From: Hyalangium minutum
Lineage (GTDB): Bacteria > Myxococcota > Myxococcia > Myxococcales > Myxococcaceae
NCBI RefSeq assembly: GCF_000737315.1
Contig: NZ_JMCB01000001.1
Location: 496,001-560,000 of the forward strand
Direction: 5' to 3'
Length of the DNA stretch: 64,000 nt
This document shows, one piece after another, positions 1 to 7,728 of the stretch; the stretch's first letter is position 1, and each line of letters begins with the position of its first letter. The translations under genes and the position numbers were made by a program. The notes under the pieces are model-generated. The model searched no databases, had not been told where the DNA came from, and saw only the letters and a program-made list of their open reading frames with translations.

Positions 1-183
1 GCGCGCTCCCTGCCAGCGCGAGAAGAGCGAACACCCACCGAGCAGACCGTCGCAGCACGTTTCCTCCCAGTTCCGAGATGGACCCGGTGATTACCACAGC
101 CGCGCTCCCGGGTCGGGCCCCAAGCTCCACCCAGGAGGTCCCCCCTTTCTCGGCCTCATGGGGATGCAGTACGTTCCCCGCCC

Positions 184-2750: not shown

Positions 2751-4391
<1,641 letters not shown>

Positions 4392-4392
4392 A

Positions 4393-4779
4393 ATGGGCGC
4401 CATGCTCACCCTGAAAGACCGCGCGGGGCTCGACTCGGAGCGTCTGGCTGCGCTGAAGACCGAGCTGGACGGCCTGACGATCCTGCAGGACGTCATCCGG
4501 TGGGGCTTCGCGCAGACGCCCCCGAGCGACGTGGCGGACGTCGTCATCCAGGACGAGTTCACCCACGATGTGGTGCTCCCGTGGCGGGACGTCTTCCTGG
4601 TGTTCGACACCACCTGACTGGGTGGAGTGAACGCGGTCTCCGTGTGGGACCACAAGCCAACGGCGGATGAGCTGCTGGACGCCCGGCTCGCTTCGGGCTG
4701 GGCGCCCACCCCCACCTCCACGCAAGAGGGCGAACAGATCCTTGGGCACGCCGCCTGCCGCGTGCCTGCGGTTCGCTGA
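4393..4779 (+). CDS. Small hypothetical protein; candidate selenoprotein by readthrough of in-frame TGA 4615-4617 (128 aa with readthrough, 74 aa without)
   Basis: ATG 4393 (or 4402) directly after the ligase stop; ...VFDTT-TGA-LGGVNAVSVWDHKPTADELLDARL...CRVPAVR-TGA(4777-4779). The 4393-4617 portion is clearly gene-like; readthrough is inferred. Confidence 0.6.
4635..4651 (+). promoter_or_regulatory. Candidate bacterial SECIS hairpin
   Basis: GGTCTC-cgtgt-GGGACC (6-bp stem with one G-U pair); loop starts 24 nt after the TGA and has G at its second position. Confidence 0.45.
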
Positions 4780-4787
4780 GGCGCCGC

Positions 4788-6119
4788 TCAGTTGTTGAGC
4801 GCGCCCCCGAGGATCCACGAACGGATGCGCGTGATCAGCCCCGGGTTGTCCACGAAGTAGCTCGGGTTGTTCTGGGGCATCCGCGTGCCGCAGGTTCCCT
4901 CGATCTTCCTCACCAGGAGCGAGTTGGCCGGCTGGCCCACCCGGACTCGCTGGATGGCCGTGGTCCCGCTGCACCGGTTGGTGCCGCTCACCCCCACGAG
5001 GTTGCTGTAGGAGCTCCCCGCCAGCAGATTCATCCCGCCGCTGGGGGACGTGTTGTCGTGGCAGCTCGTCGTGCACTGGGCCCAGATGGGCTGAATGTCC
5101 GCGGTGTACTTGGGCACCGTGGTCTTCACGGAGACGGAGCGCGTCACGGAGGCCACCCCATCGGACACGGTGACCTGGATGCTGTAGGTGGTGTCCGCGG
5201 AGATATCCCCCGAGCGCCAGCTCGCCGCCGCGCTGCTCGCGTTCGTGAAGGTGCCCGAGCCCGACGGGTTGGTGCGCCACGAGTACGTCAGCGGGTCCCC
5301 ATCCGGATCCGTGGCTCCAATGGAGAGCGCCGCGGTGTCTCCGGCCAGCACCGTCCCGGGCGCGGTGATGGCCGCATCCACCACGGGCGGCCGGTTCGCG
5401 GACGCGACGTTCGCCACCTGCACGTCCACCGTGCTCTGCGTCGTCCCGCCCTTGCTGTCCGAGACCACCACCCGCAGCGTGAAGGGGGTGTTCGCCGAGA
5501 GCAGGGGCGCCTTCCACGCGGGCGTCGCCGTGTTCCCATTCGTGAACGTCCCGGCTGGAGCCGGCGGCGACACCTGGGACCACGTGTACGTGAGCGCGTC
5601 CCCCTTGGGATCGCTCGCCGTCACCGAGAGGTTCGTGCTCTGGCCCTCGTTGACCGTGACGGGGCTCGCCGTCACCGCGGAGATGACCGGCGGGAGATCC
5701 ATGCCGATCGAGAAGGCGATGGGCGCCGAAGAGCTGGTGTTGCCCGCCGCATCCTGGGCCACGGCGATGATCCGATAATCCCCCTCGGGCCGGGTGCTCG
5801 TGTCCCAGACACACGAGAACGTGGACCCCGAGCTCTTCTCGACCGTATCCGCGCATGCCAGCGTGGGCCCCACGAAGAACTGCACCCGGGCCACGCGCCC
5901 CGAGTCGTCCTCCGCCACGGCCTCCAGCGTGACCTGTCCAGAGAGGGACGCCCCCGCGGTGATGCCTCCTGTGAGCTCCACCCGGCTCGGCGCCACCTCA
6001 TCCACCGTCGGCAGCGGCTCTTCCTCCGAGCCACAGCTCAGCGCGCCCCACCCCACGAGCACCACGGCACAGGACGCGATCCGCCAGCTCCGATAGGACC
6101 CCCGGCGTAACTCCCGCAT
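4788..6119 (-). CDS. Lipoprotein with Ig-like/PKD-like domains and C-terminal cytochrome c-like (CxxxCH) module
   Basis: Lipobox GALSC after MRELRRGSYRSW; Ig-like repeats (ATDPDGDPLTYSW, ASDPKGDALTYTW); C-terminal QCTTSCH. Confidence 0.75.
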   Translation of the reverse strand: MRELRRGSYRSWRIASCAVVLVGWGALSCGSEEEPLPTVDEVAPSRVELTGGITAGASLSGQVTLEAVAEDDSGRVARVQFFVGPTLACADTVEKSSGSTFSCVWDTSTRPEGDYRIIAVAQDAAGNTSSSAPIAFSIGMDLPPVISAVTASPVTVNEGQSTNLSVTASDPKGDALTYTWSQVSPPAPAGTFTNGNTATPAWKAPLLSANTPFTLRVVVSDSKGGTTQSTVDVQVANVASANRPPVVDAAITAPGTVLAGDTAALSIGATDPDGDPLTYSWRTNPSGSGTFTNASSAAASWRSGDISADTTYSIQVTVSDGVASVTRSVSVKTTVPKYTADIQPIWAQCTTSCHDNTSPSGGMNLLAGSSYSNLVGVSGTNRCSGTTAIQRVRVGQPANSLLVRKIEGTCGTRMPQNNPSYFVDNPGLITRIRSWILGGALNN

Positions 6120-6300
6120 TGTGTTTCCTCCCTGAAAACTCGGGCGGGCTCTAACACACCCTGTTCGCCACCTCCTAAACGGGCCCAGGCCCCCTCCTAG
6201 ACGTGGCGCGTCAAACGGGGAGGCAGCCAGCGGAGCGGCTGATCTTTGGAGCAGCAAGAGGGGTCTTGCATTGGGGCGGGGTACGTAGTGGATAAGGCGC

Positions 6301-7728
<1,428 letters not shown>

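Follow-up and report, generated by a model that had tools for sequence, protein, structure and literature searches.

The small gene at 4393–4779 of the window (the whole stretch of 64,000 nucleotides analyzed here) very probably encodes a selenoprotein of 125–128 aa, which would be made by SelB-dependent insertion of selenocysteine (Sec) at UGA 4615, directed by a hairpin at 4635–4651. A first-pass annotation had proposed a 128-aa selenoprotein with a DTT-U-LGG site, and this proposal is supported by the conservation of the TGA, by constraint on both sides of it, by homologues with Cys at the site, and by covariation of the hairpin. In the proposed mechanism, translation would start at ATG 4393 or 4402, right behind the stop codon of an acyl-CoA ligase gene. 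The mRNA hairpin, 20 nt 3′ of the UGA, would recruit SelB-GTP-Sec-tRNA(Sec), Sec would be inserted at UGA 4615–4617, and translation would go on to UGA 4777. The predicted product is cytoplasmic and has 125–128 aa; it would form a compact alpha+beta domain unlike thioredoxin, in which Sec occupies the tip of a beta-hairpin. The features of the locus are listed below.

2751–4391, plus strand: upstream gene of an AMP-binding acyl-CoA ligase (Pfam AMP-binding, E = 3.8e-79)
4393–4779, plus strand: complete predicted selenoprotein CDS, 128 aa from ATG 4393, with the in-frame UGA and a terminal TGA
4615–4617, plus strand: UGA predicted to be read as Sec, residue 75, in the motif FDTT-U-LGG; TGA in 85 of 85 stop-containing loci
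4618–4776, plus strand: C-terminal half (LGGVNAVSVWDH...ILGHAACRVPAVR), dropped by current gene calls
4635–4651, plus strand: SECIS-like hairpin with the stem GGUCUC/GGGACC and the loop CGUGU, conserved and covarying in the window's lineage
4756–4758, plus strand: conserved C-terminal Cys codon of the GHAAC motif, a candidate resolving or partner Cys; Cys in 84 of 85 Sec-type sequences
4777–4779, plus strand: true gene stop, TGA; TGA, TAG or TAA in homologues
4788–6338, minus strand: convergent gene of an Ig/PKD-repeat protein, whose stop begins 8 nt beyond 4779

When translated, the ORF from ATG 4393 ends in ...LVFDTT at TGA 4615–4617, and 53 sense codons follow in the same frame up to TGA 4777–4779. 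The ORF end, the 53-codon extension, the second TGA, and the 8-nt gap to the convergent stop had all been described in the first-pass annotation, and we reproduced each of them. The alternative ATG 4402 yields a protein of 125 aa and matches the start in most homologues. As the ligase gene stops at TAG 4389–4391, only 1 nt ahead of ATG 4393, the two genes are likely co-transcribed in the window.

In the surrounding DNA, the listed 516-aa ORF of the Ig/PKD-repeat gene (4788–6338, minus strand) overlaps the start of an M20 peptidase gene (6301–7728, plus strand) at 6301–6338. The minus-strand gene probably begins at an ATG inside this ORF (MRELRRGSY...), and therefore the overlap is likely an artefact of ORF listing. 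On the plus strand, ORF 849–2645 encodes a large protein without a Pfam match, and its neighbours are genes for HYR-domain and Ig/PKD-repeat proteins. In a Pro/Gly/Asp-rich linker of this large protein, at 1824–1895, the octapeptide DAGPIDNT occurs three times in tandem without a mismatch.

The window sequence on its own is not conclusive. The third position is G or C in 43 of the 53 codons past the UGA, a count that had been claimed before and that we obtained again. This amounts to 81% in frame; the two alternative frames reach 75% and 58%, and the G+C content of the window is 68% overall and ranges from 66 to 72%. A comparable hairpin follows ∼10% of all 1,490 TGA triplets in the window, and the folding energy is no better than that of shuffled sequence (z = −0.62). 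More generally, single-sequence folding had no discriminating power, with z-scores from −0.6 to +1.7, and no Rfam family matched in 4350–4850. These single-sequence features are real, but they do not go beyond chance. The weight of the argument therefore comes from comparative data.

A first search with the read-through protein yielded 46 relatives, mostly of 71–74 aa and ending in ...FDTT, and few of full length. When one genome per species was scanned, 175 genomes proved to have a relative, and the best 80 loci were taken from them; in these 80 genome loci, tblastn matches extend along the whole 128 aa. The best 80 loci comprise about 61 from Myxococcota (Hyalangium, Myxococcus, Corallococcus, Pyxidicoccus, Archangium, Kofleriaceae, Haliangium, and Polyangia), 18 from Acidobacteriota (Pyrinomonadaceae, Blastocatellia, and Thermoanaerobaculia), and one from a Gemmatimonadaceae MAG. 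The internal stop is TGA in all 85 distinct stop-containing loci, at the same position and in the same frame across three phyla. The first-pass annotation had allowed for homologues that simply end after DTT with mixed stop codons; it is the terminal stops of the same genes that are mixed (TGA in 59, TAG in 16, and TAA in 11).

The peptide past the UGA, LGGxxAVSVWDHxPxADELLxARLxxGWxPTPxxxxxGxxxLGHAAC, is conserved as strongly as the upstream peptide. At the same time, synonymous sites are free to vary, and one invariant Gly is encoded by all four codons. In-frame conservation of the peptide together with synonymous variation indicates purifying selection on the protein in this frame. Hence the conservation on either side of the TGA, which the first-pass annotation had named as possible support, is strong and in frame. 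TGA orthologues are present in Myxococcus xanthus (L020) and Corallococcus coralloides (L019), and the C-terminal half in M. xanthus reads PSADELLDAR...GWTPTPTSTVDGD...GHAACR.

Some of the loci have peculiarities of their own. A copy in a record of 'Comamonas sp. KCTC 72670' (L033, BNCN01000010.1) groups with Myxococcus, with the same hairpin and a near-identical protein (TEVIVQDEFTHDVVMPW...); this record is probably mislabelled or contaminated. In the Gemmatimonadaceae MAG (JBJMNJ010000435.1, L058, approximately 1897–2650), the frame runs past GYAAC to 252 aa in all, adding a C-terminal region (…DPIFDSKGRARGWMYNDVIFDQAGRPRAF…) through either fusion to a domain further downstream or loss of a stop codon. 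Three contigs of the MAG MFD04935.bin.2.27 carry near-identical copies of the gene (L057, L060, and L063) that differ by a few substitutions, one of them WDR to WGW in L063. Paralogy, strain variation, or duplication in the assembly may account for these copies.

A profile search run exhaustively against 1.84 billion representatives gave 669 hits at E ≤ 0.001. We classified 196 proteins of the family. N-terminal halves account for 123 of the 196, and 112 of these end exactly one residue before the site. Another 41 are orphan C-terminal halves called as separate ORFs. This bears out the expectation that gene callers would truncate or split the gene; NCBI records list it as a 71-aa hypothetical protein. 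The remaining 32 proteins span the site. They have Cys there in 13 cases, 'W' in seven, Ser in four, Arg in two, and Gly and Pro in one case each, and in four the site is affected by an internal deletion. The Cys codon was confirmed in DNA for P0001 (TGC), P0050 (TGT), and P0052 (TGC). The standard mark of a selenoprotein is a conserved TGA for which homologues have Cys, and both kinds of homologue that the first-pass annotation had looked for at the site were found, Cys in 13 of the 32 spanning proteins and TGA in 85 of 85 loci. The Sec form is in the majority in the family, and the Cys form is less frequent. The fold does not depend on this residue in all cases, given that Ser, Arg, Gly or Pro takes its place in divergent relatives.

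The 'W' entries were a potential objection, since the first-pass annotation had held that Trp in homologues would argue against Sec. We checked three of the seven in DNA (P0022, P0030, and P0036) and rejected Trp for them: their DNA reads TGA and had been translated under code 4. The fallback of gene callers to code 4 on short metagenomic contigs produces false Trp at Sec codons, and can thereby make a homology check wrongly seem to refute a selenoprotein. In the metagenomic proteins P0042, P0044, and P0104, an internal deletion removes the region of the Sec hairpin and joins the QDEFxHDV strand directly to the PxADELL helix. Such proteins may reflect decay of the gene or a shorter form that does without Sec.

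The hairpin described in the first-pass annotation is present, and it consists of GGTCTC (4635–4640), CGTGT (4641–4645), and GGGACC (4646–4651). The loop CGUGU starts 24 nt after the A of the UGA and has G at its second position, as had been claimed. This placement agrees with what bacterial Sec insertion requires, namely a stem-loop directly 3′ of the UGA whose apical loop is some 16–37 nt downstream and carries an early G. With one U-G pair, the hairpin scores −8.1 kcal/mol, while a competitor at UGA+17..+31 scores −7.0. In what follows, positions are numbered with the U of the UGA as 1. The window's hairpin is shared by a group of 50 distinct sequences from Myxococcaceae, Archangiaceae, and Kofleriaceae, with compensatory double changes from G-C to C-G at 21-37 and from G-C to A-U at 22-36. 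Inside the window-type hairpin, 52 of 54 sequences use TCC for Ser, and the Val before this Ser is encoded by GTY, with the otherwise preferred GTG seen only once.

A second group of 29 sequences, from Acidobacteriota, Polyangia, Haliangium, and Gemmatimonadaceae, has the hairpin (G)ACGGC-[GGUC or AGUU]-GCCGU(C) at positions 15–30. It is shifted 6 nt upstream, with the loop at UGA+21..24 and double changes at 15-30 and 17-28. The paired fraction, 99% of cells for positions 21–26 with 32–37 in the window's group (36–65% in slid controls) and 94% of cells in the second group, is partly circular because the groups were split by which hairpin pairs; the compensatory changes are not circular. Both hairpins are absent in two of the three Cys homologues examined. 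The conserved downstream hairpin anticipated in the first-pass annotation is kept with compensatory changes in the window's lineage, and in other lineages it appears in a shifted register.

We also searched for the Sec machinery. Neither the 64 kb window nor ∼0.9 Mb of homologous loci contain selA, selB, selD, or a tRNA-Sec. Neither the window nor 60 of the loci yielded a tRNA prediction by ARAGORN. When E. coli SelA, SelB, and SelD served as tblastn queries on the window and on every locus, the only hit was a weak one, in L069, to the N-terminal third of SelB. Hence, in the loci examined, no Sec gene is close to the window gene or its homologues. Sec-utilizing organisms, with counts of known selenoproteins, are given in Table S2 of Peng et al. 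(PMC5029168). In that table, the 2016 counts are two for M. xanthus DK1622, three for M. fulvus, two for M. stipitatus, three for C. coralloides, one for Cystobacter fuscus, one for Stigmatella aurantiaca, and three for Haliangium ochraceum, and several Acidobacteria are also among the Sec users. M. xanthus and C. coralloides, which carry a TGA orthologue of the window gene, are thus Sec users by this published table.

Exclusive use of TGA is expected if the codon specifies Sec, and equally under read-through of the Trp type. In the latter case, termination would be leaky, with UGA-C occasionally read by a near-cognate tRNA, for instance that for Trp, without Sec, and one would expect a short major and a long minor product. 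UGA-C is a weak termination context in bacteria, and C follows the UGA in 83 of 87 sequences; Leu directly after the UGA is never encoded by TTR, though TTR occurs at other Leu columns. In addition, the hairpin alone is statistically ordinary. Still, leaky termination is improbable, as the real residues at the site are mainly Cys, the 'W' entries checked in DNA all have TGA, the hairpin covaries, and the host species are published Sec users.

It is very improbable that the TGA is a true stop and that the N-terminal and C-terminal halves are made separately, the latter from an internal start, and assemble as a split protein. The 41 C-terminal fragments found in databases as separate ORFs would fit this explanation, as would the presence in the window of GTG 4627, from which the first-pass annotation had considered a separate ORF. 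However, this codon is GTC, ATC, ATT, CTG, TTA and others in homologues, so there is no conserved start; each Cys homologue is one continuous chain; and neither frame nor spacing changes in any of the 85 loci. Moreover, the break would land in the beta-hairpin turn of one predicted domain, and a split gene offers no reason for TGA alone. As for a nonsense mutation, a sequencing error or a decaying pseudogene, nothing speaks for it beyond the presence of the stop codon, and it is next to impossible, since 85 independent assemblies, drawn from three phyla, share the TGA and purifying selection acts on either side of it.

An AlphaFold2 model of the protein, built for P0022 with a 28-row alignment of database proteins, forms one compact domain (pLDDT 90, pTM 0.84). 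Its elements are a strand at 2–5, helices at 11–20 and 27–36, and strands at 49–52, 57–64, and 67–74, followed, after the Sec turn, by a strand at 78–85, a helix at 91–100, two short strands, and a helix at 119–122. The predicted order is beta-alpha-alpha-beta4-alpha-beta2-alpha, and the Sec site lies at the turn, or tip, of a beta-hairpin. A Foldseek search against PDB gave no match at E ≤ 0.001, and there were no thioredoxin-like structures among the listed best matches. We rejected a RelE-like fold, as the best match, archaeal RelE 1wmi_A, is insignificant (E = 0.09, TM 0.29–0.38, rmsd 8.5 Å).

Invariant or nearly invariant residues are Q53, D54, E55, H58, D59, D72, T74, U75, G77, W85, R98, W103, G118, and C122. 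The conserved QDEFTHD strand and the C-terminal GHAAC motif occur alongside the Sec site. The protein has no CxxU or UxxC motif, as FDTT-U-LGG has no Cys within three residues, and no obvious signal peptide. Of the 85 Sec forms, 84 have the C-terminal Cys, as do about half of the Cys forms, and this pattern plausibly fits a protective or resolving partner of Sec. Our best guess for the function is that the selenol is redox-active and may pair with the C-terminal Cys in a selenenylsulfide. Alternatively, Sec, His, Asp, and Cys might form a metal- or metalloid-binding site.

The neighbourhood of the gene is not conserved. Clustering of flanking ORFs, a noisy method in high-G+C DNA, found no conserved neighbour, and the neighbourhoods differ between loci, one example being an ABC transporter operon. 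The acyl-CoA ligase gene noted beside the small gene in the first-pass annotation does adjoin it in the window; however, among 86 loci searched by tblastn it is upstream only in L007 (Hyalangium versicolor) and L008, the two closest relatives. The link to fatty-acid activation is therefore incidental, and we rejected it as a functional one.

The suggestion that the family is uncharacterized holds. NCBIfam 20.0, which holds selenoprotein family models, gave no hit at E ≤ 1, and the best Pfam-A hits do not rise above noise (E = 0.055; 14 bits, where the cut-off is 26 bits). In the literature, we found no myxobacterial selenoprotein of the DTT-U-LGG kind. An inventory of May 2026 comprises 119 prokaryotic selenoprotein families with a domain model for each (PMC13188914), and in its review table, which cites Haft and Tolstoy (2025), both the family and the DTT-U-LGG motif are absent.

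If our reading is true, it adds a selenoprotein family missing from the 119-family inventory, as far as covered by that table, and from the NCBI family models. It also points to an annotation error on a considerable scale, with at least 175 genomes that have a relative and 669 cluster representatives, and with a current annotation that amounts to a 71-aa fragment, at times accompanied by an orphan C-terminal ORF. The family lives in aerobic soil bacteria (Myxococcota, Acidobacteriota, and Gemmatimonadota), and most Sec-rich lineages are anaerobes. It occurs in the genetically tractable M. xanthus, and therefore the proposal is directly testable. SECIS hairpins in two registers within one family would be a useful case for the movement of such elements within a coding sequence, and for improving selenoprotein predictors. 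It is rather likely that this is a selenoprotein family described here for the first time, Sec-dominant and with no solved fold relative and no CxxU or UxxC motif. As most members have Sec and few have Cys, it may perform strongly selenium-dependent chemistry; candidates are metal or metalloid handling and a specialized redox step.

Among known systems, the window gene resembles E. coli fdhF in having an in-frame UGA-C and a short G+C-rich hairpin within the coding sequence. The SECIS loop of E. coli fdhF is GGUC at +22..25, with G23 and U24. The acidobacterial and Polyangia homologues are similar to fdhF in having a GGUC loop at UGA+21..24, at a similar distance, and the window loop CGUGU also contains G-U. 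Unlike fdhF, the gene encodes a protein unrelated to formate dehydrogenase, and the family has two hairpin registers 6 nt apart across lineages.

With thioredoxin-fold selenoproteins (SelW-like, Prx-like, and Grx/Trx-like), the protein may share the chemistry of Sec with a resolving Cys, but it differs from them in lacking CxxU and UxxC and in its predicted fold. The RelE/ParE (BECR) fold has an order similar to that of the model, namely a beta strand, two helices, and an antiparallel sheet. Unlike RelE/ParE systems, the window family has no conserved antitoxin-like neighbour in the loci searched, and we regard this as resemblance rather than membership.

The closest parallels in Table 1 of PMC13188914 are small predicted selenoproteins, that is, the hypothetical proteins DG, DW, and DF, as well as GOS_B, GOS_C, UXX-star, and KCU-star. 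Like the window protein, these table entries are small, have no assigned function, were found by TGA/Cys alignment together with a hairpin, and are routinely cut by annotation pipelines. The window protein has no match at E ≤ 1 to their defining models. Its Sec lies in the middle of the protein, in DTT-U-LGG, and not in CxxU, UxxC, or a C-terminal 'star' arrangement, and, in contrast to the small families as tabulated there, most members of its family have Sec rather than Cys. Relative to that table, it is best described as a new family within a known kind, the bacterial selenoproteins, and the family may already stand in some unpublished or unindexed list of candidates.
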